Source of the DNA: Eutreptiella sp. 'Long Island Sound 2002'
Lineage: Eukaryota > Protista > Euglenida
NCBI GenBank assembly: GCA_964036045.1
Contig: OZ038378.1
Coordinates: 156,612,001-156,676,000 of the forward strand
Direction of reading: 5' to 3'
DNA length: 64,000 bases
Shown here: piece by piece, positions 23,728 to 43,327 of the stretch
Position numbering within the stretch: the first letter of the stretch is position 1
Layout of the letters: every line of letters starts with the position of its first letter
Notes under the pieces: generated by a model
What the model was told of the DNA's origin: nothing
The model's database searches: none
The model's input: only the letters and a program-made list of their open reading frames with translations
Translations under genes and position numbers: made by a program

Positions 23728-24717
23728 CCCCCCCCCCCCTTGTCCAAGCACCGCCAAAGGCACAGAAAACGATGGTTTGACTGGTTCCCCGTATCCCGCT
23801 GCCCTTTTGACACGGGCACAGTATAAGTCGAACAACCATCTGACGGGCGGGACGGGCACACTGTGGAGAAGGGATGCAGTGAGGCCAAACTGGGGTTTCT
23901 GGGGAAACCTGGATTTCACTGGGCAGTGGTGCTTGGATAAGGCCGGTGACTGCGTGCGGCACCCCTGATCGAAAATCCTTTTCAACTCGTAACGTGTCCC
24001 CTAGACCCCAGGGTGTGTCTGGCACAAAAGCAAGGACACATTCAGCACAGCACTGCAGAACTCTGGACTCTGTCAATCTGCATCACAGTTTCTCATGTCA
24101 TGGGCTGATTCAGTGAGAGGGCATTACAACCCAGTGCCCCGCTTGTATCGCATGCGGAACAATTGCACATGCTCTACGGCAGGTTTGGCTGCAGCTTTGC
24201 TGGTGTTGTGTATGGTCTTGTTCCACAGCTGGCGACCTTGGAGAGTCCAGGGGGAAGGGACAGCGATAGGGAACGTTATGTTGACCAGCGGCGCACAGTC
24301 ACGGTGCACCACTGAACCACTCCGCTCATATTTGATGCCGATGACCCTGGCGCCAAGGGGCGAGGGGCCCACAACAACACCATCTGCCATGACCCCAGCG
24401 GACCGCCTGCACTTCAGGGGGTACCCGGGTGGAAGAAGAGACATTCAGGACTGCAGGACAGGGAATGGGAATCTATCCTGAGCAAACAGGTACACAATTG
24501 GGCACTCAAACTGGCACAGCACTGCACAGAACAAACTAAAAACCCATTTTGCACCGTAAAATTGATGGTTCAAAAAAAAAACGACGGTGTCACCGGGTAG
24601 TGGTGCTTGGACTAGGGCGGTGCTTGGCCATAGAACGGTGGAAAGTCCCGCGATAGGTCCCCACCGACAGACCCACGCCCAAGGGGAGTGCTTGGACAAG
24701 GGAGGGCGGGGGGGGGG
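23728..24717. mobile_element. MITE-like element with Cn-TTGTCCAAGCAC TIRs; related to the element hosting the LINE at 35661-42325
   Basis: Left end TA|C-run-TTGTCCAAGCAC; right end GTGCTTGGACAAGGG..Gn|TTA. 24606-24672 is a diverged single copy of the sequence duplicated around the LINE. Confidence 0.55.
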
Positions 24718-35330: not shown

Positions 35331-35717
35331 AAATGGTGTTTGCCGTAAATCTAAACAATCACTCGTGTGGCATGCAGCCTCGCCTTGTTTCGCCCAGGCT
35401 TTACATTTTCACTCGTTTTAGTCAGCAAATACAATTTCTCACGTGGCCACAGAGGTGGCCTCAATCGCCATGCCAGTGCATGTGGCTGTGTTAAAGAATT
35501 ACACCCCTTGTGAGGAGGATCTTTCATTTTGGTGGCTGTGCTGCCGGTGGTCGTGCTAGTTTCATGCTCATGGTGCTGTGCGTGTGTGGCCCTGTTTTCG
35601 TGTGTGTCATGTTCTGTGATCCGTGTGTAGGTGCCTCCCCTAGACCATACTATGGAGATACCCCCCCCCCTTGTATAAGCTACGCCAATGTACACCTACG
35701 CCTACTGTAGCTTGGAC

Positions 35718-35812
35718 AAGGGCGTAGCTTATCTGCAGAGCGGTGGAGAGTCCAGCAATACGTCCCCACCGACAGACGTATGCCCTCATCAAGTATCGTG
35801 CGGCGCAGCCGC
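35718..35812 (+). repeat. ~95-bp direct repeat flanking the LINE; partner at 42197-42291
   Basis: AAGGGCGTAGCTTATCTGCAGAGCGG...GCCGC with 4 mismatches between copies, three of them in the last ~15 bp. Confidence 0.9.
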
Positions 35813-35857
35813 TGGCCAATATCGGAGATGGCGCCGTCAGGCGCCAACACAATGTGC

Positions 35858-38800
35858 TCAGAGTTCCAGAAAGGCGCCGCCAGGCGCCAGCACAGATGGC
35901 TCGGACCTCCTGCCCCTCTTCCTGGGATTATCACTGACATCCGTACTGTAATCCTCGCTGTCCACCCACCGCTGTGAGTCCAAACTCGCAGACGTCCCTG
36001 CCGAATCCCCCTCCCCAAGCAGGCTCCCCGTGCTAAACGAATAGCCGCTGTCGCTGGCTTCCCCCTCCCCTGAAGACATCTCCTCGAGCCCCAACTCCTC
36101 CCACTGCTGCTCCAGGCGACGTCGTTTCGGGGGGGACTCTTCATTATAGGGATGCAGCGGCCTCCCTTGCTCTGCCAGCTGATCGGCCTCTTCATTCCCC
36201 GCCACCCCCAAGTGGGACGGCACCCACCGCACCTGGAGTCGATCCCCTGCGAGCTCCCGCTCTGCCAGGACCGCCATCCAGAGTTCCTTGTGCTCTACCT
36301 CCCTCCCTGAGACCCTCCACTGGTGGCGCTGCCATTTGCTGGACCACTGCGTGATCCCTTTGAAAACATACTCTGAATCCAATACCACTACCATGCGCTC
36401 CTCCCACTGTCGATTGCGGACAGCGTGCAGAACTCCCCTGAGTTCTGCCCTGCTCACACTTTGCTTCTCCCCCAGGGGGACGAAATCTGAGGCGTTTCGC
36501 AGCGAATTTGGTCCGTACCAGGCCCCAAACCCTGCCTGCGCCCAGCCCCTGACCACTTTCGCTGACCCGTCTGTGTACACTACCGTCCACCCCTCCCCTG
36601 CCATAGTCTCCAGCTCTGCCACCACCTTGGTTTTGTACGCACCCCACTTCGCCTCTTTCGCCTGTAGCTTATCCACCTGAGGCCTCCCTCCAACTGTGGT
36701 TGGCTGCTGGGGTGGCCCCTGAAAGATCCCCGGCATTGCCGGGTTGTCAAACCATCCATCCAGGACTTTGATGAATAAAAACAGATCACGCCGAGGCACA
36801 GACATGTTGGATTCGGCGCGCCAGCGCCGCAGAACCCCTGCCCACCCTGCAATAAACTCGTCCAGCGTCGCTGGCTGGTGCTGGTATTTCGCCCTGCACC
36901 GAAGGTTCCATTGAGCCTTTAATCCCGCCCACAGCAACAAACCCTGGGTGGAGGTTAAAGAGAGCAGCGGGAAATCCCTCAGCAATCGACTGGGCTCCAC
37001 CTTCACCCCTCCCGATTCCACCAGCCCAAACGCCTTTCGCACTGTACTCTGCATAAAGGCGCCGAACATACAATGGCGGAAAACGTGTTCGTGGTCTTCC
37101 ACCCTCCCATCCAGCGGGCACAGCTTGCCCCCCAGCCTTTCCATGCGCGTTCCCAGCGGTAACTTTCGCCATAGGGCGCGGCATACAAAATCCCGGTCCC
37201 ATTTTGGCAAAAACAGTTGCCCAAACGTCTGCCACACTTCCGGTGGCTGTCGCGGCTCATGCCGCCGCTTGTGCTGCATATACAGCAGCATTTTTCGCGT
37301 AACCCAATTGTGCACCCATCGCCCCAACTCTGGACCCACGTACTGCGGCTGGGCCGCCGGAGGCGGCGACAACAGTCGGTGTACTCCCTCAAGGTACACC
37401 CCCTGCCATGTGGGCGCAATGCAGTCATACAAGCTCAGGGGTATGCCCCCCCCCTCCACCAGATCCACCCACCGCAGCACTCCTTTTTTCAGCAGAGCCG
37501 GACAATGGTAAGTCAGATGGAAGGAGTTTGCAAACAGGGAATTATGCCAAACCGGCATCAGGGGCAGCCTCGCCGTGGGGGGGGCGGGGGGGGGCAGCTC
37601 CCCCCCACCTTCGTACCGCCGATTAACTCTTCAGCGAACCCTGCAAGAAGGAGGGCACCGACAGCGGCAGCGGGCTCATCTGAAAAAACGGCAGGAATTC
37701 CTCATCAAACAGCATCCCCTGCGCCCCCGCCCACCTGCGGAAAGGCCCCACGTGTCGCTCTGGAAAACGCGACGGTCTCTGCACATACTGAGCGAAAGTG
37801 TGGCTGTGGGTCCACTGCGCGTACGAGGACAGGCTCGCCTGCCCCAAACCCCCCTCCCGGGGGGGCCGCACCAAAATCGACATCGTTAAGTCCCACGTGC
37901 TGATTCCCAGCGGCGTCCGATGCACCATGTCCATCTGTGAGCACACATGCTGGGATGGTTGGTACGCCCTGGCTGTTAAATAGCACACTGGTGCCACCCA
38001 GGACGCAAACAAAAAGGCTTTTTCTTCTAGTCCCGGCGGCAATGCCGCCATTGCCCTGGCACGCAGGAGCATCCGCGCAATGACTCTCGCGTATGCCGCG
38101 TCGGACGTGATGTTGCCTAGCTGCACCCCTAAGTATCTTATGTTCTTTTTCACGATCACCCCCGCCACTGTCTCCGGTTGGGGGTCCAGCCCCGGACTCT
38201 TCAGAATTGCATATGTTTTTTGAGTGTTCACCTGGAGCCCGGAAAAAATTCCAAATACCCTCAGTCTGTACATCACCACCCGCAGGTCTCTTCGGTGCTG
38301 CAAACCACATCCTGGTACGCAGAACAGAATGTCATCCGCATAAAGCAGGATCTGCACATCCACGTGCAGGGATTTGATGTCATAAATGAGAAAAACAGTA
38401 ATCACATCAAACAGCAGCGGGGACAGTGGGTCCCCCTGCCGAATCCCTGACCTAGGGTGCAAAAACACTGACGGCTCAAACGTGCGACCCACGCAGAAAA
38501 GTACTGGCGCCGCCATCACAGACAATAGCAGTTTCACGTACTGTTCCTGCAGCCCCAAAAACCGCACTGACGCTTCCATCATTGTAAACGTCACCGAGTC
38601 ATACGCCTTACGAAAATCTACTGCCACCATAATTTGCTTGGGGAGCCGCTCCCACTCTGACCGTGCATACACAATGTGGTCTACCATGTGCCGTCCCGGT
38701 AAAAAACCCTTCTGCTCTGGGGGAATCAGCTGCTGCAATGCATCAATTGTTTGGAGCATAATTATTGTGGACATCCACTTCAGGCACGCATTTTGTAGTG

Positions 38801-40469
38801 CCAGGGGGCGCAGATCTTCTGGCTTCTCTGCCCCTGCAAACTTCGGCAAGCACTTTAAAAGCGACGTGCCCCAACTGTCCGGGACCCCCCCCCTAGCCAA
38901 GAAAACGCGCATGACGTCATGCAGCTTAGGTGCAAAGACATCCGGCATCGACTGGTACACCTCCGCTGGGATGCCGTCCATCCCCGGGGCCGAACCCCTT
39001 TTCATCCGTTCGAGCCCTGCCATCACTATTTCCTCATTTAACTCCCTAAACAACAGAGGCATCGCCTGCCGCACTCTCTGGGGTATAGGCAAAGACTCAA
39101 TATATCGCTGGCACTCTTCAATCCCACGTCCCCCCCCTCCCATCACCCCCCCCCCCAGAACTCTTGTAGGCAACATGCTACTGCTGCGGGGGCCTCGTGA
39201 AGCACTCCCGCCCGGTCCCGTACTTTCGTTAAATACTGCCGCTCGCGCAGCTGTCGTACCAGCTCAAAGATGTGTGTGCGGCGCTCCGACTGTCGCCGGC
39301 TCCTCTCTTCCCTAGGCAGCAGTTGCGACCGCAACTTTGACACCATTCTCTCTTGGAATTCCTCGTGTTTCTCCTGCGACTGCAGTCGCACCAGCCGTTG
39401 GTATGCCGCAGACACTGTGGGCTCTTCATAGCCCAGGTCTTGCAAAAACTCACCCGCACCCGGCGCAAGTCGCACCGGTGTGCTCTCCCGCACAAGAGCC
39501 TGCAGCTGTGTGAAACCCACTGCTAGGTGCTCCCGTCTCCAGCTCACTGCCTCATCCCGCAACAGCACCCGCACGTTGTCCCACCAGGCCTCTGAGTCTG
39601 GGCATGCAACCGCCTGCAGCTTCTCGTGTAGCGCCGCAAGCGCTTCCGGATCCTCCAGCAACTCCAACGGGAACCGAAAGCGAGGGCGATCCCCGTGATC
39701 TTCCACAGGTCCGAGCTGCGCCACTACCGCCTTGTGGTCAGCCGGGGTGGCCACTGTATACACCGACCGCAAATGATGCAGTGCTTGTGTGGGCAAATGT
39801 ACTCGATCTATCGGTCGTTCCTCTCTAGTGAACCCCCGCACATCCTCGCGCCGTTCCCCATGTAAATGCACACACGCATCCTGCAACGCCCAAGCACCTA
39901 GGACTGATCCTTCCACTTTCCTTGCTGACACCACTGTCGATATTTCTTTGCCCGGAGTCCACTCCCGGGACCATAATACTGTTATGATCCGCCAGGACCA
40001 CCATCGGGAGTGGCGGCATCGCCTGCAGCTTGCTCTCCAGGCGCTCCCACTGTTGTCGACGCTGACTGGGGTCGCACGAGAAATGTCCTGTCAGGACCCG
40101 CAGGTCCCCTCCCGCCTTTGCCCGCATATGTGAGATCAGAAACCGCTGGCCCATGGCCACGGACGAGACATGCTCCCACTTGGACTCCCGCCAAACAAGG
40201 CCTGAAGAGCCTTTATCCGACTGGTCCAACTGTCGATTGAAATTCGCCGCAAATCCATTTTTGCGCAGCCACCAAGTCTGCGCATCAAGCACCCCTTGGT
40301 CATGCAGGTGTGTTTCCTGCAGTCCCAGCAGGTCAATGTTATGCTTTTTGACGAGTCTCATCACCGAGGCTCGCCGAGGCTCGCTGCGACGCGATTCCCG
40401 CGGTCGTCGGAGCCATCCGTTGACATTCAGCGACCCAAATGCCGTCCTCAGGGACGGCCAGTGGCTCAT
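35858..40469 (-). CDS. LINE ORF2: APE endonuclease - reverse transcriptase - zinc finger - RNase H (3 frameshifts, 1 internal stop)
   Basis: APE: SLNVNG, GLQETH, VLADHNS, IDRVH, DHKAV. RT: GSAPGMDG, LRPLALQN, VDFRKAYDSV, GIRQGDPLSP, LYADD, RYLG. Zinc finger: LCPLDGRVEDHEHVFRHC. RNase H: YTDGS, RAEL, DSEYV, WVPSH..NEEAD. Frameshifts near 39945, 39150 and 37590 (in or next to A/G runs); TAA at 37623-37625. Confidence 0.9.
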
Positions 40470-40486
40470 TACGCTCGCGATTGCTA

Positions 40487-42164
40487 CTAGTCGCCGCGTT
40501 TACGTTTGAATACCTTGAGCGCACCCACATCGCTGTCGTTGAAATCCATCGGGTCGGACGCCCTGTCCGCAGGCGGAGCCCCTTTTCCACCTCCCTTGCC
40601 GCCTTTGCCCCCGCGTCCCTGAATCGAGGCCTTCCGCGACATGTACTCTTGCCGTGAAATGGGCACTATGAGCGTTGAAGACTGCGCCGCCTGCAATACC
40701 TTACCAACCAGCTGTCCAGCCTTCGGTCCAGTCAGCATCCAAGTTTTTGAGCGTATGTCCCCCACATGAAAGCGACAGCGGTCCAGCACAAAATTATCCT
40801 GGTCTGTGCCTTGCGTCAGGAGCACTTGTCGAAGGACTGTGTCCCGCCAGTACGGCGGCACATTCGTCAGAAAGACGCTTTCGCACGGCCCCCATGCCTC
40901 TGGGGTCCCGCTGGCCACCGTGACTGACGATGCTGCCACGCCGGTCATTTGCTGACCTGACTGCTCGTCCCGCAGCTCCAGCCCCAAGTCCTGGAGCCAG
41001 TCTGCCATTTTCTGTCGCGTGAACGTATAGCCTTTCTTAGATAGACCAACTCGAATGCGCTTGGCATGCATGATTTGGGCAGCAAAGTGTTTGCCTGACA
41101 TGATGTCTCCTAAATCCCAGAACGCCGCCATTACGTATGAGAAAAAATACTTCAGATGTTTGGGCTGGAAATCCTTGGACATCGTTATCTCCACGCGGTG
41201 TTCGGCCGTGCCGACGGCCTCTCCCGTGTACCACTTAAGGGGCAGCAGCGCAAATCGCGGATAGCGACCAAACGTCTCCACCACTCCTTTAGCCTGAGCG
41301 AGGCCTGTCTCCAGGTAGAGATACCGATTGCTCGCGGTATCCACCCCCGGACATATGACTGCTATATTCTTGTCTATGTCCATATATGTCATCAGCTCAT
41401 CCTCCCAGGCAAACCCATACTGTATAATCAGCATTGGGTAATCAATTTCAGGGTCAGGGAACAACAGACCATCAGCATTTTCCCCCGGGAGCCGCAGACT
41501 TACCATTTTGTAGTATACCAAGGCCGACTCCATTCGTGAACGGTGTGTGGATGTTGCAACCCACACGTCGTAGGACTGAGCTTTCGCCACAAAGCCCACC
41601 AGGCTGTCGCACTGCCCCACACGCACCGGGACGAACGGCAGCTTGTCTTTCAACTTTATAGCCGCCATCAAGAACTCCGAGCTCTCCACTTTGGTTGATT
41701 TTTTTGTACAGGACTAGGTCAAGCCGCCCAAGAGTCGTCAAAAGTTTCATCAGCTTATGTACGTATTCCAAGAAAACCGGCATGTCCTCGCCATCAGCCT
41801 CACCCACCAGTAGTAGATTAGGGCTGGCGCCATGAAACAGCGTACGCATACGCTCAACAGTGTTCACGTCATCCAAGACAGAAAACTTGACTGAACCATT
41901 ATCGACATCAGGGATGCCCCCATGCAGCCAGAACTCGTTCTGCAGGACGAAATCCGGCGGCTGTAGCGGCGTCATAGAAACAAGCTGCTGAGACTCAGCA
42001 GCGGGAAGCACCGGCTCTCCGGTGGTGCAATGCGTAGCCATATGATCCTTGGCACTGCCGCGGCCTTTGGATCGCTGGCTCATCCTATTCTCCCGCAAGA
42101 CGACACAGGGAGGAGGGGAAAGAGAGGGTACAGACAAAGCAGGTGGGTGCGTTTGCTCACTCAC
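40487..42164 (-). CDS. LINE ORF1 (~560 aa once one extra A in the run near 41700 is removed)
   Basis: Track ORFs 41472-42164 and 40487-41689 join as ...LVLYKKSTKVESSEFLM.... Ends 17 nt before the ORF2 ATG. C-terminal SVFLTNVP (RRM-like) and GRGGKGGKGGGKG; no CCHC knuckle seen. Confidence 0.7.
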
Positions 42165-43327
42165 AGAGAGCGATGGACATCATATTAGCACCCACGAAGG
42201 GCGTAGCTTATCTGCAGAGCGGTGGAAAGTCCAGCAATACGTCCCCACCGACAGACGTATGCCCTCATCAAGTATCACGCGGCGGAGCCGCGACACAAGG
42301 GCGTAGCTTATACAAGGGGGGGGGGTACACCGGTACGGGTCAGTGTGTCAGTAGCATAGACAAGATCTCGGCCCTACTGTGCCCAGCAGTTAGGCTGCCA
42401 GCAGGCCCACATCTCTAGGCCCAGCCCCTCACCTTGCCCAAGGGCAGCAGTGCCAGACTCCACACCCCGGCGTTGCACACCCCACGCACTGCGGCCGGGC
42501 GTGAGCCTCACGCGTCCATGTACTTCTAAGCCACTTTCTGTGTTTTGGCCGACGTGTTGGGGGGGAGACCACGTTGCTGTCCATGGGCCCTACGGAGGCT
42601 GGTCTTCCCGAGCAGAAGCGGTCTGCTCTGATCCTGCAAAGAATCCACGACAAAATACTGTGTTCTTCCCCTTACCCCTGTTTTTCCGCAGGCACTTCCT
42701 CCCTCCTTCGCCCATTTGCTTCCCCTGTCTGCCTGTCTTGGTTCTTTCGACCCACTGTCGCCTGCTCTGCCACCGCATCGCCTTGACAGGGGAGGCATAC
42801 ACACGGGCCACACAACATGGCACAAACAAAGAGAGGAGCACACGCACAAGCGCCACACCAGCACAACCACCGGCAGCACCGCCGGCGCCACCCCTGTACA
42901 CTGCCTACCCCCTGCCGCCTTGGGGCCACAGCCAAAGAGAAAGTGGGTTGTGTCTGCATATACTATGGGGACAGGCTTGAGGCGCTCAATCATAGTGTGC
43001 TCTCGGGTAAAGAACGTTTTTGGCATTTTGGGTGGCTGTTGTGGTCCACTGTGGGCCCGGGAGTGAAGGGGTGACATTCGGTTTAGATACCAGCCTTGTG
43101 AGCGCTTGCAGGCCAGGGACCATTGCCGTCTCAGAAAACGAGTGCGTTGGGCTGCATATCCCATGCTGTCTTGAGGGCACACTCAAAAGGGGTGATAAAG
43201 GGGGTTTTCACACACACACACACCCAAAGGGAAGGAAAAACCCCCCCAGAGCACCAAAATGGCCAAAAAAAGGCCTGGGGTGGGGTGGGAGGGCCAGGGT
43301 ATCACCTCGACCACCCTGAAACCGTCA

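Follow-up and report, generated by a model that had tools for sequence, protein, structure and literature searches.

The two 95-nt direct repeats that flank a full-length LINE in the window (the whole stretch of 64,000 nucleotides that was analysed) most probably consist, once per LINE, of the LINE's own 80-nt 3' terminal module together with a 15-nt copy of its target. We give this reading of the sequence a probability of about 0.85. The two occurrences of the repeat would reflect a tandem of two LINEs, from different subfamilies, at a shared target.

As first described, perfect 26-nt inverted repeats and TA flanks enclose a repeat–LINE–repeat arrangement. The inverted repeats, at 35661-35686 and 42300-42325, match at 26/26 positions (33 nt at 94% complementarity when extended), and TA is found outside both of their ends. 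The direct repeats at 35718-35812 and 42197-42291 differ by four mismatches, and between them lies a LINE of 6,384 nt on the minus strand, with its 5' end at 42196 and its 3' end at 35813. Read along the LINE strand, the window presents a TIR, a stub of subfamily B, a 15-mer, the subfamily A LINE with its tail, a 16-mer and the remaining MITE. The composite includes the following features:

35659..35660, unstranded: left TA flank of the host MITE, directly before the poly-C terminus
35661..35686, plus strand: left TIR of the 88-bp mini-MITE, C10 followed by TTGTATAAGCTACGCC; this is the non-target end, which continues AATGT...
35687..35716, unstranded: rest of the mini-MITE body, reading TCCAAGCTACAGTAGGCGTAGG and then TGTACATT on the minus strand
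35717..35732, minus strand: target 16-mer ATAAGCTACGCCCTTG, the downstream TSD copy of the full-length LINE
35733..35812, minus strand: 80-nt 3' terminal module of the full-length LINE, subfamily A type, without poly(A)
35813..42196, minus strand: full-length but degraded LINE, subfamily A
42197..42211, minus strand: middle copy of the target motif, the 15-mer ATAAGCTACGCCCTT, without the usual G, joining the B stub to the 5' end of the full-length LINE
42212..42295, minus strand: 84-nt stub of a second LINE, subfamily B, made up of the last 4 nt of the 3' UTR (TGTC) and the 80-nt module
42296..42311, minus strand: upstream copy of the target 16-mer, part of the right TIR
42300..42327, minus strand: right TIR (42300-42325) and TA flank (42326-42327), the target end of the MITE

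The 80 nt belong to the LINE. Comparison of LINE loci revealed that the tail haplotype follows the type of the upstream 3' UTR (16/0 versus 0/24, Fisher p = 1.6e-11; the B loci were chosen by similarity to a B-type query, and the unbiased subset gives 16/0 versus 0/3), and that it shows no association with the MITE variant downstream (p = 0.49). In more than 20 loci with differing adjacent MITE sequence, the B tails are 100% identical. The B 3' UTR end, ...GACAAT[G/T]TGTGTC, precedes a tail with the B marker set in 24/24 non-duplicate copies, and two further B-UTR tails, L010 and L055, are each one marker position off that set. The upstream copy in the window is an exact B tail, preceded by the B-specific TGTC, and at least 20 B tails elsewhere match it at 100% identity over 101-102 nt. 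In the downstream copy, positions 7, 14 and 15 show the A markers, and position 65 has a C as in its nearest kin, L020 and L021. The upstream copy is of subfamily B and the downstream copy of subfamily A, and all four mismatches between them are subfamily markers that are also seen at independent loci. Rather than coming from one pre-existing target, the two flanking copies come from different LINE subfamilies. That the repeat is "not a simple TSD", and that one copy travels with the LINE RNA, had been suspected earlier, and the tail indeed follows the LINE subfamily; the argument then given, four mismatches against a single nonsense change, rested on a wrong tally of ORF defects.

Both LINEs sit in a MITE of 88 bp, from a very abundant family whose members have TA flanks, end in poly-C and carry a TIR of 26 nt. 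Members of the family range from 88 to about 1,100 bp, the longer copies holding 0.3-1 kb more inside the body. The host element has TIRs, is non-coding and is present in many dispersed copies, as expected of a MITE. TA directly precedes the poly-C terminus in 55/82 TIR ends, the rest being mostly poly-C tracts interrupted after the TA; the TA flanks, present at nearly all ends, are indistinguishable from a terminal TA of the element itself. Stowaway-like and Tc1-mariner-type MITEs are short non-coding elements with TIRs, TA at both ends and thousands of copies. The host family shares with them the TIRs, the TA at both ends and the high copy number, whereas its poly-C terminus is unusual and its TA may belong to the terminus and not to a duplication.

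The LINE is target-specific: more than 30 independent copies, with differing 5' truncation points and outside flanks, have their insertion point at one and the same position in one end of this MITE, bearing out the original inference that it targets a TIR element as Tx1L targets Tx1D. Among 30 LINE loci, all of the 3'-complete copies (about 24) run into the same MITE sequence, or into a further LINE of the same array, and the same TCCAAGCTACAGTAGGCGTAGG/TGTACATT mini-MITE body sequence was found after every LINE tail. Truncation of the LINE 5' ends occurs at more than 15 different positions; most of these ends lie directly against the same TIR, and the outside flank differs from copy to copy. 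The target is kept exactly through CCCTTG in 24/34 occupied ends, and none of 39 opposite (non-target, AATGT...) TIR ends carries a LINE. At unoccupied MITE ends, for example in L030, L056 and L057, the TIR runs straight into GTCCAAGCTACAG and the 95 nt are absent (1,364 exact copies, versus 0 for the control). At least 1,364 exact copies of the target end are spread over all large contigs.

At plain sites, full-length copies are flanked on each side by the 16-mer alone (15 exact junctions across the genome), and this is a 16-bp target duplication at sites of the unoccupied type. In L011 both flanking 16-mers carry the same rare G-to-A variant, so the duplication derives from the target; truncated copies retain variable lengths of the upstream 16-mer. 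The true target duplication would be one of 15-16 bp, inside the normal LINE range. The flanks of the LINE copies share the MITE site, as had been proposed, with a duplication length of 16 bp and not of ~95 bp. Of the ~95-bp flanking duplication initially described, 80 nt are the 3' end of the LINE and are missing from unoccupied MITE ends. Seemingly "empty" MITEs with one copy of the repeat (L032-L040) all hold a 2-19 nt remnant of LINE 3' UTR between TIR and tail, which rules out the 95 nt as native MITE sequence.

A variant of this reading moves the border between LINE and target. The LINE RNA would end in ...CUGCAG-AUAAGCUACGCCCUU, repeating the sequence that lies upstream of the cut. Both nicks would fall at CCCTT(G), the duplication would be of 0-1 bp and all 95 nt would be LINE-borne. 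It fits the perfect coupling, in both directions, of tail type to the next six bases (ATAAGC versus CCAAGC), and the fact that the MITE end used is always the one continuing CTTG. However, the rare variant shared by both 16-mers of L011, the D-type tails, which differ by target after CCAAGC, and the variable upstream 16-mer lengths of truncated copies, as a variable second nick predicts, all argue for a target-derived 16-mer, and we consider the variant fairly unlikely. The boundary between the LINE-carried and the target-derived part is placed only to within about 10 nt. When junction variants were excluded, the last 15 nt of B tails gave no firm signal of excess variation.

Under the preferred reading, with an 80-nt LINE tail and a 15-nt target copy, the LINE family would insert by target-primed reverse transcription at one site in one MITE end. 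The first nick would be made opposite TTGT^ATAAGC inside the TIR, and the second after CCCTTG, 16 nt further in, giving the 16-bp duplication ATAAGCTACGCCCTTG; we infer these exact nick positions from the junctions. Each insertion would regenerate the target motif behind its own tail, so that a later LINE could land there and arrays could build up. In the window, the first to arrive was probably a subfamily-B copy reduced by truncation to its final 84 nt, and a full-length subfamily-A copy would then have entered the regenerated motif.

Stacking of this kind was also found at other loci. L005 includes a C-family LINE, its tail, the 15-mer and then a full-length A copy; further stacks are present in L014, L052, L053, L055 and L060, and tail ends also occur in pairs 110-560 bp apart, among them C4:30488985/30489095, C2:187652296/187652415 and C3:167731975/167732138. 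The G-less junction (15-mer) of the window recurs in L005 and at C9:33038699.

The usual G is kept at 15/18 plain junctions and is missing at both stacked full-length junctions (window and L005), a loss that the two-insertion model does not predict.

The two tails might instead stem from one event, in which a read-through or chimeric RNA from a master copy (B tail, 15-mer, LINE A), truncated in the B 3' UTR, was inserted once. The outer junction, CCCTTG/TGTC, does resemble an ordinary 5' junction, and the recurrence of the G-less inner junction in L005 and at C9:33038699 hints at an inherited or systematic cause. Yet B tail, 15-mer and LINE A 5' end are joined in exactly this way at a single place in 2.28 Gb, the window itself, and the upstream tail of L005 is C-type and not B-type, which calls for a different master, making a single event improbable. 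Ectopic recombination or gene conversion between two LINE-bearing MITEs could draw on hundreds of similar copies in the genome, and rearranged copies are known here (an inversion in L011, internal deletions in L019 and L023). The stub, however, has a canonical insertion junction at either end and no breakpoint within homology there, and stacks with canonical junctions are seen again in L005, L052, L053, L055 and L060, so that we regard such an origin of the second tail as very improbable. A true 95-bp TSD, left when a single LINE entered a MITE natively holding the 95 nt through nicks 95 bp apart, agrees with direct repeats that flank the LINE exactly and with a private LINE divergence of about 1.3%, which alone permits about 2-3 differences per 95 nt, but it is contradicted by the subfamily markers that make up all four differences, the B 3' UTR remnant on the upstream copy and the unoccupied ends without the 95 nt, and full-length copies elsewhere show a 16-bp duplication.

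The composite had further been proposed to be a unit that a transposase could move as a whole, of which we found no sign. When the composite was sought at loci with different flanks, only the same-truncation sets L008/L009, L014/L015 and L045-L047 were found, and since their members share both truncation and outside flanks they are segmental duplicates.

The window LINE is a non-LTR retrotransposon of the APE type. It encodes an APE-type endonuclease (PF03372, E = 7e-08), a reverse transcriptase (RT; PF00078, E = 6e-22) and an RNase H (PF00075, E = 2e-25), arranged as follows:

about 42179-40490, minus strand: ORF1
about 40499-35861, minus strand: ORF2
about 40433-40032, minus strand: APE domain
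about 38822-38118, minus strand: RT domain
about 37260-37064, minus strand: weak zf-RVT-like motif after the RT (E = 0.11, short of the cut-off)
about 36586-36164, minus strand: RNase H domain
near 41705, 39953, 39200 and 37630, minus strand: frame breaks

The coding region consists of six stop-free pieces in alternating frames. One of the frame switches is the natural ORF1/ORF2 junction, because copy L002 shows the same arrangement, a 563-aa ORF1 followed by ORF2 in another frame. Breaks private to the window LINE are a +1 shift near 41705 and a -8 shift near 39953, and the frame switches again near 39200 and near 37630. With at least four frame breaks, and not the "only one nonsense change in ~6 kb of ORF" counted before, the LINE is degraded. 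Its full-length 5' end, CGTGGGTGCTAATATG, is common to L002, L004 and L006, and the 5' end CGTGGGTGCTATTATG is found in L003, L007, L019 and L030. The private divergence of the window LINE is 1.27%; an age argument based on this value was dropped, as alone it cannot separate a TSD from a non-TSD origin of the repeat.

The nearest named relatives of the RT are plant L1-type, Mucorales and rotifer sequences, at 24-32% identity. A word-based protein search with the RT returned distant, generic L1-like relatives only, and a Protein Atlas look-up of the RT gave no information on clade. Elements of the Tx1 clade typically have an APE-RT-Cys/His motif architecture without RNase H. The window LINE has a clear RNase H domain, which is atypical for Tx1, and its zf-RVT-like motif is weak (E = 0.11).

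Every LINE RNA of the family would end in a conserved, structured 80-nt module (...CCACCGCUCUGCAG). The module is conserved across subfamilies, and the neighbouring 3' UTRs are unrelated. Its predicted fold includes three hairpins with two compensatory pairs, a covariation drawn from few, related sequences, and the tail fold showed no gain in stability over shuffled sequence (z = 0.28). In stringent-type LINEs, such as the eel UnaL2 and R2 with its 3' UTR, a 3' stem-loop is recognised. The 80-nt module resembles these in being a conserved structured 3' end, with no poly(A) dependence, that is kept in extremely truncated copies, and it is probably the handle recognised by the LINE reverse transcriptase; unlike in UnaL2 and R2, it is conservation and weak covariation only that point to such recognition here.

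A comparable system is known from Xenopus laevis, in which the APE-type LINE Tx1L has a highly specific endonuclease and a unique site inside an apparent DNA transposon, Tx1D (PMC1950540, PMC6719617). The window system shares with it the LINE-in-TIR-element composites. Its differences are that it lives in a euglenid protist, that insertion is into the very TIR end of a poly-C MITE flanked by TA, that the LINE encodes RNase H and has a conserved tail of 80 nt without poly(A), and that several sister lineages are present, each tied to its own TIR variant. The Tx1 and R1 clades are listed as the target-specific groups of APE-type LINEs (PMC4640811). Like LINEs of these clades, with their snRNA, 5S and microsatellite targets, the LINE described here is inserted precisely and repeatedly into a multicopy sequence, with 5'-truncated copies and a fixed 3' junction. 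Unlike those listed, its target is a mobile element and not a host RNA gene or simple repeat, and its arrays would form through regeneration of the target by insertion. The striking ~95-bp LINE target duplication is removed and the structure is explained simply; the system left is a clean protist case of a LINE within another transposon, for which the cut site is exact, the duplication measures 16 bp and the 3' module, without poly(A), is defined. Hundreds of truncated or stacked copies, and sister lineages with another target word, make endonuclease specificity and 3'-end recognition testable. In repeat libraries of this kind of alga, stubs of LINE tails can be expected to be mis-annotated as part of the MITE or as SINEs.

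One such sister lineage is represented in the window by a second element:

23728..24717, unstranded: element of a sister MITE family, TIR motif TTGTCCAAGCACCGCC
24628-24682, inside the 23728-24717 element: 55-nt stub of a diverged (D-type) LINE tail

The stub sits between two copies of the element's own CCAAGCAC.C.CC motif, a 13-nt duplication of the TIR motif. The element has a variant TIR and, as described earlier, one diverged copy of the repeat, which is partial; it is not LINE-free, as the repeat is itself the 55-nt stub of a LINE tail. Across the genome, CCAAGC comes after the D tail end 501 times and ATAAGC 0 times, and ATAAGC comes after the A/B tail end at least 148 times and CCAAGC 0 times (the D-tail counts come from pattern searches admitting ATAAGCTACGCC). 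Lineages A, B and C go with TTGT^ATAAGC and lineage D with TTGT^CCAAGC, with no cross-use among hundreds of junctions. Tentatively, these couplings may reflect a radiation in which site-specific LINE lineages (A to D) diversified along with the MITE families, each with its own TIR variant, although we hold this at somewhat below even odds. If true, the shared 80-nt handle would let very short stubs, possibly SINE-like derivatives, be copied, and target-regenerating insertion would lead to arrays of LINEs within the ends of transposons. Three different target contexts occur after D-type tails, with CCAAGC alone in common; since these contexts vary with the target beyond CCAAGC, the duplication comes from the target.

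The window holds a real site-specific LINE-in-MITE system, of a kind already known. As the original prediction described, a perfect 26-nt inverted repeat (window 35661-35686 and 42300-42325; 33 nt at 94%) has TA outside each end, and within it two 95-nt direct repeats with four mismatches (35718-35812 and 42197-42291) enclose a minus-strand LINE of 6,384 nt with APE (apurinic-type endonuclease), reverse transcriptase and RNase H. This LINE belongs to subfamily A; its sisters are lineages B, C and D.

Layout of the element in LINE-strand order, right to left; 16-mer and 15-mer are copies of the target motif.
42327-42296, minus: TA and right TIR, including the first 16-mer
42295-42212, minus: subfamily-B stub, 84 nt
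42211-42197, minus: 15-mer
42196-35813, minus: subfamily-A LINE, full-length
35812-35733, minus: 80-nt tail (3' terminal module) of LINE A
35732-35717, minus: 16-mer
35716-35659, minus-strand order: remainder of the 88-bp mini-MITE, left TIR, TA

The window spans C1:156612001-156676000 of a 2.28-Gb eukaryotic assembly, G000. A search of this genome with the composite as query returned 30 loci. After the 3' end, the approximately 24 copies that retain it all continue into one MITE sequence, GTCCAAGCTACAGTAGGCGTAGG..., or into a further LINE of the array. Across the 30 loci, full-length copies occur beside copies shortened at the 5' side, with more than 15 distinct truncation points; the 5' end abuts the same TIR in most of the copies, and the outside flank is different for each. 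The target is exact through CCCTTG in 24 of 34 occupied ends, the others ending a few bases sooner. The two MITE ends diverge just inside their common 26 nt (CTTGTCCAAGC vs AAAGTCCC or AATGTACAC), and none of 39 ends of the second kind holds a LINE. The LINE copies are independent, target-specific retrotransposition events. The proposed analogy with the Xenopus LINE Tx1L and its TIR-element target Tx1D (PMC1950540, PMC6719617) is thus borne out functionally, as independent insertions into one MITE end.

The direct repeats had been taken for a flanking duplication of about 95 bp, but four lines of result demonstrate that the 95 nt come from neither the MITE nor a duplication of the target. At unoccupied MITE ends (e.g. 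L030, L056 and L057) the TIR directly joins GTCCAAGCTACAG; a 32-mer across this junction occurs 1,364 times, compared to 0 for a control. Full-length LINEs at plain ends have solely ATAAGCTACGCCCTTG on each side; across the genome, the exact full-length 5' junctions number 18, and 15 have this form. The first 80 nt of the repeat track the LINE, not the MITE. Tails behind the subfamily-A 3' UTR have G, T or A at position 7 and C at position 15 (16/18 copies), positions 14-15 usually being AC, while those behind the subfamily-B 3' UTR, which is approximately 500 nt long, unrelated to that of A and ends in ...GACAAT[G/T]TGTGTC, have C at position 7 and GT at 14-15. Tail type matched upstream UTR type (16/0 vs 0/24, p = 1.6e-11; many B loci were picked by similarity to a B-type query, and the unbiased subset gives 16/0 vs 0/3) and had no association with the downstream MITE variant (p = 0.49). 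At more than 20 loci with differing MITE sequences alongside, B tails match one another at 100% identity across 101-102 nt. In the window, the upstream repeat copy is an exact B tail with the B-specific TGTC just before it; the downstream copy has all three A-type markers, and L020 and L021, the copies most closely related to it, share its fourth difference, C at position 65. Each of the four mismatches thus marks a lineage and does not reflect decay of a duplication, and the 95-bp "duplication" is what ordinarily results when two LINEs stack at the same target.

At locus L005 a 5'-truncated C-family LINE is followed by its tail, a 15-mer and a full-length A copy, and the junction, CCCTT directly joined to CGTGGG, is identical to that of the window. 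Further stacked loci are L014, L052, L053, L055 and L060, and exact tail ends were found as pairs 110-560 bp apart. Such LINE arrays would form because insertion recreates the target motif behind the tail. Insertion upstream of an existing A copy would leave the last G of CCCTTG; the inner junction is without it, which argues that LINE A entered the site recreated by the B stub, and it is from this that we infer the order of the two insertions. That the G is missing from both stacked full-length junctions, in the window and in L005, is not predicted by the stacking model. A third full-length junction without the G, ATAAGCTACGCCCTT followed by CGTGGG, is located at G000:C9:33038699, 19 kb from L005.

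In the simplest model, one nick in the bottom strand, opposite TTGT^ATAAGC, and another in the top strand, after CCCTTG, would produce a 16-bp duplication. Both flanking 16-mers of L011 include the same G-to-A variant, truncated copies retain the upstream 16-mer to variable length, and D-type tails are followed by CCAAGC and then by whatever the given target continues with. In a less probable variant of this model the LINE RNA itself would terminate in AUAAGCUACGCCCUU, which would also fit the perfect coupling between the type of tail and the six bases after it: A and B tails are followed by ATAAGC at least 148 times and by CCAAGC 0 times, D tails by CCAAGC 501 times and by ATAAGC 0 times. The word CCCTTGT is present at both cut sites of the two-nick model, 16 nt apart (window 42296-42315 and 35713-35732, minus strand). 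The cut-site contexts are C10-TTGT^ATAAGC and GCCCTTGT^CCAAGC; the latter is exactly where D-type LINEs insert, so that two LINE lineages have adjacent targets in a single MITE end.

The 80-nt module is kept across lineages whose adjoining 3' UTRs are unrelated. It has no poly(A) and its predicted fold includes three hairpins, the first with a stem that does not vary and a loop that varies freely, the second with two compensatory pairs; the z-score for fold stability was not significant. We infer that the module is a putative recognition handle for the reverse transcriptase. In two MITEs (L037 and L038, about 1500-1560) the tail starts with TAAGCT... and not GCGGCT..., so that TTGTATAAGCT, the TIR word, occurs a second time. 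Hairpin 1 of the tail is similar to this word, a likeness which hints that the tail may have been captured from a MITE in the past.

The element at 23728-24717, considered a LINE-free relative, is a member of a sister MITE family (TIR motif TTGTCCAAGCACCGCC), and its "repeat" turned out to be a 55-nt D-type LINE tail stub between two TIR-motif copies. MITEs L032-L040, empty in appearance, hold tails with 2-19 nt of LINE 3' UTR just before them.

The LINE had also been credited with only one nonsense change in about 6 kb of ORF; its coding region is in fact split into six stop-free pieces in alternating frames. Comparison of the window copy with five other full-length copies gave a plan in which an ORF1 of approximately 563 aa precedes ORF2. 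Frameshifts private to the window copy are a +1 near 41705 and a -8 near 39953; its frame also switches near 39200 and 37630. Degradation was found in all six full-length copies examined. The closest non-self reverse transcriptase relatives are generic L1-like proteins from plants, Mucorales and rotifers (24-32% identity). In the LINE, the reverse transcriptase domain is followed by a sub-threshold zf-RVT motif and then by RNase H, a domain atypical for the Tx1 clade.

Excision of the composite by a transposase is structurally conceivable, since the TIRs are intact, but among the loci compared no composite recurred with different flanks. A single 1.2-Mb stretch (G000:C1:186.05-187.20 Mb) contains eight of the genome's 18 exact full-length 5' junctions, all in one orientation, a pattern suggesting that a block carrying LINEs was amplified segmentally; two copies of this region, L019 and L023, have an internal deletion joining LINE positions of about 39260 and 38461. 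In L011 (5591-6754) the 5' portion (window-equivalent 39777-40928) has the opposite orientation to the remainder of the copy, with 14 nt of overlap, which looks like the twin priming of mammalian L1. Subfamily B differs from A in the 3' UTR segment of approximately 500 nt between window-equivalent 35906 and the tail (L010, L017, L018 and L024). L004 (657-1500) has an A-type tail, yet carries an extra insertion of approximately 845 bp at the point of the B/A difference, with a 25-nt overlap (35906-35931).

The euglenid spliced-leader motif, TTTCTGAGTGTCTATTTTTTTTCG, occurs 5,458 times genome-wide (≤1 mismatch) compared to 0 for a control, in keeping with a Euglena-type genome. Its matches are strewn along contigs and not solely in tandem arrays, suggesting massive dispersal of spliced-leader-bearing sequence.
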